DNA of 33,328 bases, filler included, from Heteronotia binoei (lineage: Eukaryota), in NCBI RefSeq assembly GCF_032191835.1. It is 3 parts of 3 records of this genome, joined end to end, with 100 filler letters (N's around TTAATTAATTAA, not from the genome) between each part and the next. Parts side by side here need not be neighbours in the genome. Positions count along the whole stretch, not along the records: positions 1 to 7,568 come from NC_083232.1; 2 more parts are not named here. One strand, 5' to 3'. Shown piece after piece: positions 1-7,568 of this stretch. Made by a program: the position numbers and the translations under genes. The notes below the pieces were generated by a model. The model was not told the origin of the DNA. It did not search any database and saw only the letters and a program-made list of their open reading frames with translations. Each line of letters starts with the position of its first letter. Positions within the stretch are counted from its first letter, which is position 1.

Positions 1-136
1 AGTAGACAATACTGACTTTGGTGGACCCAAGCACTGATTCAGTGTAAAGAAGCTTTGTGTTTGTGACTGGACTAGACAATACTGACTTTGGTGGACCCAA
101 GCACTGATTCAGTGTAAGGGAGCTTTGTGTTTGTGT
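1..136 (+). repeat. Two tandem copies (70-bp period) of a Squam2-like SINE 3' tail
   Basis: tagacaatactgactttggtggacccaagcactgattcagtgtaa...gctttgtgtttgtg at 1-65 and 71-136, similar to the tails of the SINEs at 10389-10832. Confidence 0.7.
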
Positions 137-632
137 CTTCTGGTGCAATTTTGTTCTCAGATCCTGTATTTACTTCATCAGTATATGGGATAAGGCACTT
201 TCTCAACTGTGCTGCATAATGCAGCCTATTTATTTTGTCCTGTTTTCTCTGTTGGCTCTATCTGCGCCGCCTTCATCACTTTCGGGGTGTGGATCCCCCA
301 GTGGGGTGGTCTCCCGACACCCTCTGCCAGCTGTTTCTGATAGCCCTGTGCCCCCTCTTTCATTTGATATGTGTCCCGTGCGGGTGCCACCCTCCCGCCG
401 GGAGATGCCGCAAAATGAGCCCCCTTGAGGCTTATGGCGGCAGGGCTCGGGGGAAGCGAGCTAGACTGCTGTTCTTTTGAGGGGTTATAGAGTGTTTCGA
501 GCCTGTCCCTGTGGCATCGGTCCCATCGTTGTGGGGCCCAGGGGGCCGGTGCAGCTGCATGCTGAAGCAGCCTGTCGGTCACTTCTGGGTTCCTGTCCTG
601 CATCTCGACCTGTGTTATTAGTGCCAGGCTGC

Positions 633-1580
633 TTCGGCGGTGGCATGACATCACCGGAGGTGCCGTCACTTCCTGTTTCCGGCAGGTGGCGCGGGGGGGG
701 GGGGGGTGATGTCACAGGAAGTGATGTCACTTCCTGTTTCCGGCGGTGGCATGCCGTCGCCGGAAGTGACGTCGCCGGAAGTGACGTCACTTCCTGTTTT
801 TGGCAGGTGGCGCGGGGAAATGATGTCACAGGAAGTGATGCCACTTCCTGTTTCCGGCGGTGGCATGACATCACCGGAAGTGACGTCACTTCCTGTTTCC
901 GGCAGGTGGCGCGGGGAAATGATGTCACAGGAAGTGATGTCACTTCCTGTTTCCGGCGGTCGCATGACATTGCCAGAAGTGACGTCACTTCATGTTTCCG
1001 GCAGGTGGCGTGGGGGGAATGATGTCACAGGAAGTGATGTCACTTCCTGTTTCCGGCGGTGGCATGACATCACCGGAAGTGCCGTCGCCGGAAGTGACGT
1101 CACTTCCTGCTTCCGGCAGGCGCTGTGGGAGGGGGGGGTGATGTCACAGGAAGTGATGTCACTTCCTGTTTCCGGCGGTGGCATGACATCACCGGAAGTG
1201 CCGTCGCCAGAAGTGACGTCACTTCCTGTTTTCGGCAGGTGGCACAGGGGAAATGTTGTCACAGGAAGTGATGCCACTTCCTGTTTCCGGCGGTGGCATG
1301 ACATCACCGGAAGTCCTGTCACCGGAAGTGACGTCACTTCCTGTTTCCGGCAGGTGGCGGGGGTGAATGGTGTCACGGGAAGTGATGTCACTTCTTGTTT
1401 CCGGCGGTGGCATGACATCACTGGAAGTGACGTCACCGGAAGTGACGTCACTTCTTGTTTCCGTCAGGTGGCGCGGGGGAAATGGTGTCACAGGAAGTGA
1501 CGTAACTTCCTGTTTCCGGCGGTGGCATGACATCACCGGAAGTGACGGCACTGGAAGTGACGGCACTTCCTGTTTCCGGT
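633..1580. repeat. Higher-order tandem array of ETS-CRE-like palindromes
   Basis: About 17 alternating A/B monomers with core (a/c)(c/a)ggaagtga(c/t)gtcacttcctgtttccggc. The dimer period is roughly 93-115 bp. Confidence 0.95.
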
Positions 1581-1619
1581 GACGCGCGCGCACCCCTGCC
1601 TTCCCCCCCCCCCCCCAAA

Positions 1620-1658
1620 GGTGTCCCTGGCTGGCCTTCAGACATTATGGCCACCCTA
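1620..1658 (-). mobile_element. Putative hAT-like terminal inverted repeat closing the element that carries the array
   Basis: Reverse complement tagggtggccataatgtctgaaggccagccagggacac resembles the element start at 29011 (tggggtggccagaccgtcccggg). The partner end was not found in the window. Confidence 0.45.
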
Positions 1659-1810
1659 ATTGCTGCAGTTAGGTAGGTTAGAGTGAACACACAGGAAGCG
1701 ACCTTATTTTGAATCAAAACCTTAGCGCGTCAAGGTCCATGTTATCTACTCAGGCAGGCGTCGGCTCTCTAGGTGTAGAGGTATTTCATACCACCTAGTG
1801 CTTGGCGCTT

Positions 1811-1893
1811 TTTAACTGGAGAAGTGGGGGGTTGAACCTGGGACCTTCTGCACAGCAAGCAGACGCTCTACCGCTGAGCCACAGCCCCTCCCC
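1811..1893 (-). mobile_element. tRNA-derived SINE head (Squam2-like)
   Basis: Reverse complement ggggaggggctgtggctcagcggtagagcgtctgcttgctgtgcagaaggtcccaggttcaacccc has Pol III A and B boxes and matches the 10.2-10.8 kb SINE heads. Confidence 0.75.
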
Positions 1894-2044
1894 AAGCATG
1901 ATCCACTAGAATTCTTCTGCACAAGCCCCACTCAAATTCACGAGGGCGCTACTGTCCTCTCATACATCTAAGTGGGATTTGCGGAAGAGCATGGGTGGAA
2001 ATGTACTCTTTTTGTTTGGGAATACATGCTGTGAATGTACAGGA

Positions 2045-2237
2045 ACACATGAAGCAGCCTTAGACTGAACCAAACCCAAGTGTATCAAGCTCAGTGTTGT
2101 CTTCAGAGATTGGCAGTGACTCTCTAGGGCCTCTTGCAGAGGTCTCTCCCATCACCTACTGCCTGACCCTTTTCAGTGGTGGTACCAGGGGACTGAACCC
2201 AGGGCCTTCTGCATGCGAAGCAGAGAGTCTTCCGCTG
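2045..2237 (-). mobile_element. Diverged Squam2-like SINE
   Basis: Reverse complement follows the same head-body-tail layout (gcagaaggccctgggttcagtccc ... gagagtcactgccaatctctgaagacaacactgagcttgat ... aaggctgcttcatgtgt). Confidence 0.7.
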
Positions 2238-2589
2238 TTTAAGTTTATTCTGTAAAATTTGGTGCTTTAGTAGATTTCAAAAGTTGCTGAGACAGATGTA
2301 TTTCCTGGAGTTCTCTTTTGCCTCAGCAGAGTTGTCCCCAAAGGAGGGGATTTGGTGGAAGCAGCTGCAGTAGCTCTTTGGTTCCAGCAGTGGCTTAAAA
2401 GGCACAGGGGGCTCTCTCTGTTGGATTATATGCCATTTCACTATGTAGACCTTCCTAACCTCCTCTGAGCTCTGACAGCAGAGCCTGTTTGTGCAAGGCA
2501 TGATGCATGGATCAAAAATCTGCGCTGTCTTGTTTTTTTCTCAGGCTCTCTTCTTTTCCTGTATTTGGCAGGCTTCTTTCAGAAGGTGA

Positions 2590-3057
<468 letters not shown>

Positions 3058-4340
3058 TAGAATTGCACAGCAAGATACATATAGATTTTTTCCTCCGCCT
3101 CTGTTTCAATTTGCCATTCAGGTTACTCTTTGTATTTATTTTAAGGATATCTAAAACTGCTTTTTTTTGCCAATTCGTCATTAGCATTAATATTAATGCT
3201 GATAATGACACACAGAGGATTGCTGTGCCAGGTTAAGGTTGGCGCTTGAGAAATTCTGCCTTCAGGAAGTGAAATGTTATTCTTATTGATTTTCGAAGAT
3301 GCGATAAGATGTAATGATATTGAAACCAATCAGTTCTTAATGAAGGTAGAATTTCATAGGCCTGAAATTCTGTAACCTAGAAATTCTGCAGGAGGTGTCA
3401 AGTTAAAAACCAAGAAAGATGTGAAGTTTCTGCATTTTAGCTTTTCTCGACAGTAAGATTTTTAGATATACCTTATTTTGCTTAAATGTCTTTTATAAAT
3501 GTTATTCCAGCATTTGCATTAGATAGTGCTTGAAGTGCAGAGATAAAATCAGCAAGATATTTTCTGCCTGTTCTTAAAGGTTCAGAAGGTCCAGTGGGTT
3601 CCCAAATAAATAAAAGGACAAGGATTGCCATTCAGAATCACAGCAACAGCCTCCCTGGTTACTTCTCCATTCAAGCATACTTATAATTTGCACAGTATCC
3701 CAATAGGTAGATGAGGGCTATAGTTGCCGTCTGAAGCTTTCTGCCTCAGTTGAATGGCAGTTCAGAATTCTTTCTGATTCTTCCCTTCCCTTAAATTGGC
3801 TTTCAGTGCATTCATCCTAGTGTTTCTCTCTTTCTTCTTGCTATTCTGCTAACTCAACAGCTTGCTTACATTGGAACTGGACACAAAGCGGTTTCCCTCC
3901 CTTGTCTTTTCTTAATGGAAATTTCCTCACTGACTTTCTCGGTGTTCCTCCAAAAAGTTAGAATATGCTGCTTGGTTGATGCTGAGTGCATTCCTTTCTG
4001 AGTGGCCTCTGATATCTCTGTTTGCCCCTCATGCTCACCCCCTCCCTCCATTCTTCTCCATGTACACCTTTGTGGTCCCTTGCCACTTAACACCCTCCAT
4101 CTGGAGACAGTTCAAAGTGAAACCGGTATTCACACTTGCTTTCCTGTCTTCTCTCTCGCTGTGCCCTTGCTCTTGACACAGCGAGGTCATTTCTGCAGCA
4201 GTGGTCTCAGGCCTGGAGCCTTCAGTGGATGCTGCTGCAGCTTCTTCAGCTTAGGCTAACTGTCGAAGCATGCCCTAAAATTGTGATTTCTCTCTGTGCT
4301 GCTGAAAGGTCGACGTGAGGTTTTTGTTTCCCCTCTGCAG

Positions 4341-4489
4341 TCTCTTAGATATGATACTAGCTACTTCGTGGAATATTTTGCCTTGGACCTCCTTATGGAA
4401 AACGGAGCATGCCATGGTGTTGTTGCCCTTTGCATAGAAGACGGCACCATACATCGTTTGAGGGCAAAGAATACAGTCCTCGCCACGGG
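4341..4489 (+). CDS. SDHA: SDHA internal coding exon (149 nt)
   Basis: [50 protein letters not shown]. Acceptor ccctctgcag, donor gtaaag at 4490, phase 0/2, in frame with flanking exons. Confidence 0.97.
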
Positions 4490-5586
4490 GTAAAGCGCTA
4501 ACAGTTGTATTGGAGGAGTGTAAAAGTATCTCTTCACCTTGTCCTTACTCTGCCCTGAGACTCAAAGGGAGGAGTGGCTGATATCATTCACGGAGTGCAT
4601 TCTTTTCCTCCTCTGGGCAGAGAGGGAGAGCAGCGGGCTCCTCCTTTAGGGTTGTCCTCAAGTCAGATGACTCCCACCCTGTATATTGGGAAGCCTTGTC
4701 CCCAGCTCCCGAGCGCTGGGGGAGTGCCATCCTCCCCCCTGCTTGCCCACCAGACTCCCTGGCCACCCTGCTCTCACAGAGTGCCACCGTCACCTCAGCC
4801 ACCTAATCAGTGCCGTGTGTGTGGGGGGGGGGGGTCAGTTCCTGCTGCTCTTCCCCTGCCTGCTCACCCACAGGGGAGGGGTGGTGGGGGCTGGAGGCGG
4901 TGAGCAGCGGCTGCTCCTCCCCCCCCACCTTAGCAGTGGGGGGAGTGATAGGGGGAGAGGCAGCTCCTGTTTAACCTCCCCTCACCTGTGGAGAAGCATC
5001 AGTGTTGTGGGGCTGGAATTGATGGCCTTGGTAGCGGCGGTGGTGGGGCAGCGGCAGCGCACACCCCATCTCTGCCTGGGAGTGTCGGCAGGGCTGAGGT
5101 CAGCGGTGTGCTCTTCCTTCTTTCCCACTGTATTTTTTTTGGGGGGGGGGTATTTAACTCCACCTCAACTGAGAAGGTTACATTTTTCTGTTTTCAGAAA
5201 AATACCCCGCTCTGAACCTGGCCCCAGTTTTTGGGTTTGTCAATCCACATGGGGGCCAAGTTGTGCCCATGCAAATGTCTGTGGGTTTTTTTTTTTAAAT
5301 GTGAATTTTCAAATAAATCCTTGTAGTTTGGGGGATGGGGCTGGTATTCAGCTTTATCCATGATGAGAGAGCCTTCTGGGGAAGTAGCCTTCCAGGTGCT
5401 TAACTAGTGTGGCTGTAACTGCATCTGGACATAAAGCCCAGTCTATATTATGATGTCTGTCAGAGCACCCATTCAGATGGCTGGCAACACCTGTTTGATG
5501 GAGCTGCTCCCTTCTGCAATAGTTTCTCATGAAGTTATTAAGTAGGAAACACAGTGGGCAGTTATTAACTGCGAACTGTTTTCCAG

Positions 5587-5711
5587 AGGCTACGGGCGCA
5601 CATACTTCAGCTGCACATCTGCTCACACTACCACTGGAGATGGCACAGCGATGGTCACTCGGGCCGGCCTTCCCTGCCAGGACTTGGAGTTTGTGCAGTT
5701 CCATCCAACAG
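5587..5711 (+). CDS. SDHA: SDHA internal coding exon (125 nt)
   Basis: [41 protein letters not shown], containing the QFHPT active-site motif. Acceptor ttccag, donor gtaaaa at 5712, phase 2/1. Confidence 0.97.
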
Positions 5712-5999
5712 GTAAAAGTTATCTGTTGGATTGTAGGTAATTAAGGCTGATGAAAAGCAACAGATCATCCAGTCTATACAGGAACAAAAGTGGGCATTTT
5801 CAGTGCCTCTCACAAAGATATAAGATAGGCAATATTATCCCGCTGGAGAATTTTATGGGCTATTTAAATAAATATTGTGTATGGAATTTAGTCGTGGCTT
5901 ATTTAGTGAATGATGATCAAGCCAAGGTTTCAGATTTATTCCCCTCACTTGTAGCTCGCGTACTTCTTGTGCTGAACCACCTCGTGAGATGTCATCTAA

Positions 6000-6221
<222 letters not shown>

Positions 6222-6352
6222 TGAATTTGGTTTGGAGTTAGGATGGCCCATTTGTAATCTCCTCTGAAATCAGCACGCCTGCTGTATATCCTAAATAATA
6301 AGAATAAAAAATAGTCATAGACAGGACTTGATTAATTGAATAATTTGTAGAC

Positions 6353-6866
6353 CAAGGGTATCAAACATGTGGCCCAAGGGCTGGATCAGGCCCTTGAGCA
6401 GCTCACTGTCCTCTGCTTCCTTCTCTCTCTCTTGCTCCTTTCTGCATTATAGCTGGTTTTGCCAGGCTTCCTCAGTCACACAGGAGCTACAGAGCAAAGC
6501 CTCCATTTTCTCCATTGGGTGACCAGCACATGAAGCAACTTATGTACAAAAGCTCACAGTGTCCAGCCATCTCATGTTTTCCCCTGGGTCTTAGGCTCAA
6601 AGCATTAACCATGAGATTTCTGTAATGAATGTCAGTGAACCAGAAGTAGGTTTGCAGCTTAACAGATACCTACCTGAACAACACCTGAACAGCCTGCTAA
6701 TCTTTTAAACATGTTTTGAGTCTTTAAAAAATCTTTAATTGTGTTTGTGTCCTTTATAAAGTGTGTCCCTACTTGGCATTACATTTTATGACACACATGG
6801 CCTGACCTGACAAGGTCTCCTTTATGTCAGATCCGGCCCTCATAACCAGTGATTTCAACACCCCTG
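6353..6866 (+). mobile_element. Non-autonomous hAT (Charlie-like) MITE
   Basis: TIRs caagggtatcaaac / tttcaacacccctg and a near-perfect 8-bp TSD ttgtagac / ctgtagac. Its interior is homologous to 15119-16014 in reverse. Confidence 0.8.
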
Positions 6867-6989
6867 CTGTAGACTACGTGCAGTGGAAAGTTGACTTTCT
6901 TGACAGACCCTTGCCACTTGACTGGATGTATGGATTCTTACATATTTACTCCATGGATTGTGTGGGGATAAATGTATTCAATGCCTACA

Positions 6990-7185
6990 TAGCCCTGACC
7001 GGGTTAGCTCAGGCTAGTCTGATCTCGGAGGCTAAGCAGGGTCATCCCTGGTTAGTTTGTGGATGGGAGACCTCCCAGGAGGTCCTGGGTTTGCTACACA
7101 GAGGCAGGCAATGGCAAACCACCTCTGTGTTCCATATGGGGTCACAATAAGTTGGTTGCGACTTGACAACACTTCCCATCACCAC
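6990..7185 (+). mobile_element. 5S rRNA-derived SINE with Sauria/BovB-type tail
   Basis: gtctgatctcggaggctaagcagggtcatccctggttagtttgtggatgggagacc matches the 5S rRNA internal promoter region, followed by ggcaatggcaaaccacctctg...ggggtcacaataagttggttgcgacttgac. Confidence 0.75.
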
Positions 7186-7197
7186 AAGGCTTGTCTC

Positions 7198-7405
7198 TGA
7201 CCTGGACGGCCCAGGTTAGCCCGATCTCACCAGATCTCAGAAGCTAAGCAGAGTCAGCCCTGGTAAGTACTTGGATGGGAGACCACCAAGAAAGTTCAGA
7301 GTTGCTACGGAGAGGCAGACAATGGCAAGGCACCTCTGTACGCCTCTTGCCTAGAAAAGCCTACAGAGTCACCATAAGTTGGCTACAACTGGACTGTGCT
7401 TTCCA
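7198..7405 (+). mobile_element. Second 5S-derived SINE, head-to-tail with the first
   Basis: gcccgatctcaccagatctcagaagctaagcagagtcagccctggtaagtacttggatgggagacc plus the same tail type. Confidence 0.75.
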
Positions 7406-7556
7406 ACAAAGACGGGCAGATGGTCAATTCTGGATGCTATGATAGCTGTTGTTTTAATCTCCCAGATGGTAAATGATGATGTGCCGCTTGAAATGTTTGA
7501 TAAAACCGTGCAGTGGTTTACGTCTAAATGTTGGCCCTTATTTCTTCTACTAACAG

Positions 7557-7568
7557 AGGCTGTGGGCC
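7557..7568 (+). CDS. SDHA: First 12 nt of the next SDHA exon, truncated by assembly gap
   Basis: Acceptor tttcttctactaacag followed by a ggc tgt ggg cc. This completes AG+A=Arg and reads R-G-C-G-P, the expected continuation of IREG-R-GCGP, then runs into Ns. Confidence 0.85.

Follow-up and report, generated by a model that had tools for sequence, protein, structure and literature searches.

What we read as a real, motif-dense tandem-repeat CpG island with a putative regulatory role lies within an SDHA intron of Heteronotia binoei. The array, a higher-order minisatellite at positions 635-1579 (+), was found in a 33,328-nucleotide window of assembly GCF_032191835.1, the whole stretch of DNA that was analyzed, of which positions 1 to 7,568 come from NC_083232.1 and form the 7.6-kb piece considered here. 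On balance we favor the interpretation that this minisatellite was amplified locally and behaves as an orphan intragenic CpG island that is unmethylated in the germline, most simply through occupancy of its ETS and CRE sites. The simplest reason for such an unmethylated state would be that roughly 31 strong ETS sites and eight full CREs, including five perfect GABP-alpha/CREB composites, are occupied; an array occupied in this way would constitute both an orphan intragenic CpG island and a factor-binding platform.

SDHA is partly covered by positions 1-7568, on the plus strand. Translation identified four complete exons, of which the first downstream of the array is at 2689-2845 (LENYGMPF...LYGR) and the further ones are at about 4341-4491, 5586-5710, and 6031-6201 (all +); a fifth exon begins at about 7558 (+), with only its start included. 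The exons have AG/GT borders and give a contiguous SDHA translation. They were searched one by one rather than as a joined spliced model: each matched the Pfam family FAD_binding_2 above the cut-off, at consecutive profile positions 94-310, and the 56-residue exon matched the avian, porcine, and human complex II flavoprotein with an E value of about 1e-31. With four intact plus-strand exons and both kinds of match, the gene is SDHA, as an earlier sequence-only reading of this DNA had stated. Since exon 2689-2845 lies downstream on the plus strand, the array is intronic in SDHA, on the sense strand, and directly upstream of the LENYGMPF exon; the intron that bears it is presumably intron 4 by human exon numbering. 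The same reading had noted that GABP/NRF-2 regulates respiratory-chain genes, and the literature agrees: NRF-2/GABP sites are described in the promoters of cytochrome oxidase, ATP synthase beta, SDHB, SDHC, and SDHD, while SDHA itself is absent from this list (PMC4568969). The association between the array and SDHA is a single-locus coincidence, and its weight depends on the number of such arrays genome-wide.

The array measures 945 bp and comprises 17 head-to-tail monomers of 45-61 bp, which we defined by cutting at the invariant tail ...CTTCCTGTTTCCGG. Approximately 17 monomers in an A/B dimer had been proposed at 633-1580; the bounds are refined to 635-1579 and the number of units is exactly 17. 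B units (n = 9) are odd-numbered and have lengths of 45, 48, or 60 bp, A units (n = 8) are even-numbered and span 54-61 bp, and the alternation between them is strict, with a B unit at both ends of the array. Tandem Repeats Finder detected a 99-bp period (3.2 copies, 91% matches), a 115-bp period (5.2 copies, 88%), and a 229-bp period over 767-1579, along with nested 15-bp sub-repeats. The combined B+A unit is 99 bp long in the left part of the array (about 804-1056) and 114/115 bp long in the right part (1057-1579). Long B units contain an additional copy of the ETS-CRE 15-mer, which is thus also the smallest repeat unit. Minisatellites have units of roughly 10-100 bp in head-to-tail order and a total length of at least 0.5 kb, and the array is one by this measure.

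On the left, the array is preceded by a GC-rich unique flank (241-634) with a GC content of 0.60 and an intermediate CpG observed/expected ratio of 0.51, in which we detected no significant monomer similarity and no protein-family match. On the right, a spacer (1580-1682) comprises a (GC)n stretch, a run of 14 C (1604-1617), and the segment earlier proposed as a 'TIR' (1620-1658); an alignment of three SINE copies, in which the SINE ends near 1683-1690, indicates that this spacer belongs to neither the array nor the SINE. Decayed monomers were sought in both flanks by alignment, and the scores fell within the shuffle range; the flanks are therefore unlike decayed monomers and the edges of the array are sharp.

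Some further features of the array were recorded. A unit 2 contains a G14 homopolymer (692-705, +) instead of the GGGGAAA spacer, and this run forms a homopolymer inverted pair with the C14 run past the array, bracketing most of it; the pair could be a structural feature or a weak spot of sequencing or assembly. On the SDHA sense strand, the A units start (e.g., at 897-908) with a pyrimidine tract and CAG, then GTGGCG (CTTCCTGTTTCCGGCAG|GTGGCG). CAGGTG occurs seven times, i.e., a 3' splice-site arrangement juxtaposed with a weak 5' one, and these may be putative cryptic or recursive splice sites. Rfam matches inside the array (MIR4387, 32 bits against a gathering score of 84; sbcD, 31.5 against 40) were rejected as artefacts of the palindromes.

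The motif that the array multiplies corresponds to a known composite site. Published work defines this site by the precise overlap of an ETS site with a CRE, (C/G)CGGAAGTGACGTCAC; GABP-alpha and CREB bind jointly only at the exact overlap, the motif is enriched in promoters, and both factors are inhibited by CpG methylation (PMC3464117, PMC4555227). The array matches that definition exactly, in agreement with the earlier identification of a methylation-sensitive ETS-CRE motif co-bound by GABPA and CREB1 (PMC3464117, PMC4555227). Exact copies of the composite CCGGAAGTGACGTCA are present at 775-789 and at further starts of 874, 1088, 1322, and 1436 (+), all five at the positions previously given, and each is followed by C, so that the full 16-mer is matched five times. 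The 18-bp perfect palindrome GGAAGTGACGTCACTTCC occurs in four exact copies (777-794; further starts 876, 1090, and 1324), as does its TG-decayed form GGAAGTGATGTCACTTCC (starts 717, 930, 1030, and 1149). When up to one mismatch was allowed, the 15-mer had 15 matches, all within the array, compared to 0.00 expected from 200 dinucleotide shuffles. The 945 bp also contain 31 strong ETS sites, C[CA]GGAAGT, with both strands counted, eight full CREs (TGACGTCA), 17 octamers of the form TGATGTCA or TGACATCA, and seven copies of the 11-mer CGGAAGTGACG, for which only 226 occurrences are reported across the entire human genome (PMC3464117). All of the motifs counted (16-mer, 11-mer, CRE, octamers, and ETS) are confined to the array. 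These copies are not independent, as one seed unit was amplified; what is improbable by chance is a seed carrying the exact 15-bp composite. Such a composite is very unlikely in a random 50-bp seed, which points to a regulatory origin of the seed.

The array coincides exactly with a CpG-island-like block, which is new in this analysis. Its GC content is 0.59 and its CpG observed/expected ratio is 0.89, while the ratio in the adjacent intron is 0.00-0.38. Taking as CpG island a length of at least 200 bp, a GC content of at least 0.5, and a CpG observed/expected ratio of at least 0.6, we found that every 200-bp window across about 601-1700 qualifies (GC 0.56-0.61, CpG observed/expected 0.65-1.05) and that the neighboring windows fail. 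A second GC-rich block, in the next-but-one intron (4560-5160; GC 0.60-0.66, with G13, C8, and T8G10 runs), has a CpG observed/expected ratio of 0.23 and no significant similarity to the array region; being GC-rich yet CpG-depleted, it is a useful contrast to the array.

We used the substitutions among repeat copies as an indicator of germline methylation, comparing each monomer to the consensus of its own unit type (A or B). Methylated germline DNA is expected to show a 10-fold excess of transitions at CpG. In the array, transitions were found at 8/144 CpG positions (5.6%) and 27/783 non-CpG positions (3.4%), an odds ratio of 1.6 (P = 0.23), in a test based on roughly 50 substitutions, of which some are common to several units and so not independent. 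A CpG transition excess was rejected at P = 9e-17 if 10-fold, 3e-5 if 5-fold, and 0.03 if 3-fold, on the assumption of point mutation after amplification, with older decay absorbed by the consensus. Non-CpG sites diverge by about 5% from the consensus, which implies that the copies are not very young, and only 8% of CpG positions are lost; the intron around the array is CpG-depleted, which implies that CpG decay operates in this genome. Recent expansion, GC-biased conversion, or homogenization through concerted evolution could mimic such retention of CpGs. The substitution pattern suggests that the CpGs have been retained since amplification and that the array has been hypomethylated in the germline over the long term, and such a state would fit occupied sites. 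GC skew is positive on the sense strand (0.11-0.22). This polarity goes with R-loops at unmethylated islands, and we infer that an R-loop-type polarity may apply to the array. More broadly, the rate of CpG relative to other transitions among repeat copies offers an inexpensive first indicator of germline methylation from a single assembly.

The divergence between the two unit types records an earlier phase. The second CRE site reads GATGTC in 5/8 A units and GACGTC in 7/9 B units, confirming a previously noticed tendency of A units to carry the former and of B units to keep the latter. Four differences separate the A and B cores; three of them are CpG transitions if the ancestral octamer was TGACGTCA, and the fourth, CAGG versus CCGG, is a transversion. 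The first CRE-like octamer is TGATGTCA in A and TGACATCA in B, i.e., mutual reverse complements that are each one deamination step from TGACGTCA, and at the second CRE the A units read TGATGTCA while the B units keep it intact. The old A/B differences amount to CpG decay, so the seed carried methylation at some point, which counts against the reading that we favor. The A/B CpG difference is one old decay event spread by higher-order amplification rather than a site-by-site gate.

From this pattern a stepwise origin can be proposed. Alongside a pair of overlapping ETS-CRE composites, the seed unit of about 50 bp carries a palindromic ETS-CRE-ETS core, and its tail adds two further ETS cores (CACTTCCTGTTTCCGG). 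In the ancestral monomer both ETS-CRE composites would have been full; its duplication would have been followed by divergence of the two copies, mainly through decay at methylated CpGs. The A+B dimer that resulted would first have been amplified with a length of 99 bp; once the ETS-CRE 15-mer itself had been duplicated, adding 15 bp, the amplified unit would have been 114/115 bp long. Unequal exchange together with replication slippage probably drove these steps, aided by hairpin-forming palindromes of 18-24 bp. As single-stranded DNA, one higher-order unit forms a stem of about 20 bp with a minimum free energy of -23 to -30 kcal/mol (z = -4.9 to -5.7; no shuffle was equally stable), which would make slippage and unequal exchange plausible.

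We weighed this local amplification against an origin in mobile DNA, namely that the array represents the internal part of a mobile element (hAT-type MITE, Helitron, LINE 5' promoter monomers, or LTR U3 enhancer repeats) with similar arrays dispersed, a possibility that we regard as unlikely. Tandem housekeeping-promoter motifs are typical of transposon promoters, and the array is made of such motifs; moreover, it is part of a GC-rich block spanning about 1.4 kb (241-1682) whose rather sharp, insertion-like compositional edges set it within an AT-richer intron, between SINEs, and the piece does contain a hAT-like MITE candidate at another place (6353-6866). However, no defining feature of any transposon class was found in the 7.6-kb piece, analyzed without a repeat library. 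The segment at 1620-1658, which the sequence-only reading took for a hAT-like TIR, has no inverted or direct partner of at least 9 nt and is simply spacer beside the SINE tail. Between 100-640 and 1575-1720, inverted or direct repeats of at least 9 nt were absent, the only inverted 8-mer being GGGGGAAG, and the direct 8-mers that might represent the 8-bp TSD of a hAT element were scattered, with none at plausible ends; no TIR and no TSD of at least 9 nt marks the candidate ends. The region 136-1720 had no match to the rest of the piece in blastn (word size 7). Pfam searches of the flank and array ORFs gave sub-threshold noise only, leaving the flanking ORFs without coding remnant or family match, and the translated long open frames of the array and left flank had no match among 5.8 billion predicted proteins. 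Exact-pattern scans for the palindrome in viral contigs and for the 27-nt monomer core in metagenome contigs returned 0 matches, in collections poorly suited to vertebrate repeats. With respect to LINE 5' monomers and LTR U3 repeats, there were no element ORFs beside the array and no terminal repeats, and the flanks do not resemble decayed monomers. A minus-strand LTR picked out by eye (AATAAA near 228-233, 7-nt ends TGCAATT / AATTGC) was at chance level, with no supporting inverted match of at least 8 nt. The earlier proposal of a transposon-borne minisatellite therefore finds no TIR partner, TSD, LTR end, coding remnant, or SINE similarity to stand on, and this absence of transposon hallmarks within the 7.6-kb piece argues for a probable local origin.

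An origin from the neighboring SINE has the geography in its favor. A well-kept tRNA-derived SINE occupies 1683-1895 (-), with a tRNA-like head at 1817-1888 (40 bits; tRNA-Ser-like by ARAGORN), and its 3' tail stops roughly 100 bp short of the array; a second copy of the same family, older and 5'-truncated, is at about 2040-2240 (-), and the tail common to both also matches 3-138. SINE-derived tandem repeats are reported across 56 squamate genomes (PMC10702118), and a 70-bp duplication of a SINE tail is present at 3-135. Nevertheless, it is very improbable that the array is a satellite of this squamate type: its monomers do not detectably resemble any SINE copy in the piece, whether tRNA-derived or 5S-like, and their motifs are absent from the main text of PMC10702118. 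A different objection is that the array is a neutral, silent minisatellite: its motifs would have been present in the seed by accident, it would be methylated as the gene body is, and its CpG content would stem from recent expansion or conversion. In favor of this, no function is known for most minisatellites, CpG decay is recorded in the A/B split, tandem copies provide no independent evidence of selection, and the counts behind the CpG-rate test are small. We nonetheless consider this reading doubtful, given that non-CpG sites have diverged by about 5%, that only 8% of CpG positions are lost, and that a 5-fold CpG excess is rejected; moreover, the exact 15-bp composite is very unlikely in a random 50-bp seed.

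Transcription factor-binding tandem repeats include EWS-FLI GGAA microsatellites, the SVA VNTR, mouse L1 promoter monomers, and CTCF-binding macrosatellites (e.g., DXZ4). Like these, the SDHA array is a homotypic site array arising from repeat amplification, in which the number of sites scales with copy number. It differs in that its unit is a two-monomer higher-order repeat of 99-115 bp with a composite ETS-CRE site, in that its activity is only putative, and in that we found no mobile-element context around it. The array also resembles tandem-repeat orphan intragenic CpG islands, since its length, GC content, and observed/expected ratio are those of a CpG island and it lies in the gene body, away from the exons in the piece; in contrast to them, this island consists of the repeat alone, and its methylation state is deduced from the substitution pattern. 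With respect to the promoter ETS-CRE motif (Chatterjee et al., 2012, PMC3464117; He et al., 2015, PMC4555227), the exact 16-mer is present, five times over, with the two methylatable CpGs and the CpG-island-like context of that motif. Whereas each known ETS-CRE site is a single copy with a fixed position in the proximal promoter of a mammalian gene (PMC3464117, PMC4555227), the copies in the array, known here from sequence, are tandem, extended to an ETS-CRE-ETS palindrome, intronic, and non-mammalian. Finally, the array shares with squamate SINE-derived satellites (PMC10702118) its position as a tandem repeat beside SINEs in a squamate-like genome, but none of the SINE copies in the piece is related to its monomer.

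As for function, a stronger claim can be formulated, in which the array is a copy-number-tunable GABP/CREB enhancer or a cryptic intragenic SDHA promoter that is unmethylated in the germline; we consider it improbable. If it were true, repeat length and methylation would determine how strongly this squamate lineage expresses a complex II subunit, by means of a heritable 'rheostat' made from a promoter motif that is normally single. The alternative suggestion of a transcription factor sponge is implausible on numbers, as about 31 strong ETS sites and eight full CREs compare with very many per vertebrate genome. Should the array prove to be bound and unmethylated, it would represent a natural homotypic array of a composite promoter motif inside a respiratory-chain gene, would allow a direct test of GABP/CREB-dependent output against site number and CpG methylation, and would show how orphan CpG islands arise from tandem repeats outside mammals. 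If silent, it would be an ordinary minisatellite with an unusual seed.

Other repeats were observed in the 7.6-kb piece. The SINE 3' tail at 3-135, on the plus strand, is tandemly duplicated with a 70-bp period (1.9 copies, 96% matches) and can be viewed as the two-copy start of a SINE-derived tandem repeat comparable to those of squamates (PMC10702118). The candidate hAT-type MITE at 6353-6866 starts with CAAGGGTATCAAAC... and ends with ...GATTTCAACACCCCTG, giving an imperfect TIR with about 10/16 matches; it is flanked by TTGTAGAC (6345-6352) and CTGTAGAC (6867-6874), an 8-bp TSD with one mismatch, and was missed by automatic repeat tools because of gaps. The last intron of the piece contains two 5S-rRNA-like repeats, at 6999-7091 and 7206-7302 (+), that are 74% identical; they match the Rfam family 5S_rRNA with 29.8 bits, below the gathering score of 38, and are probably 5S-derived SINEs.
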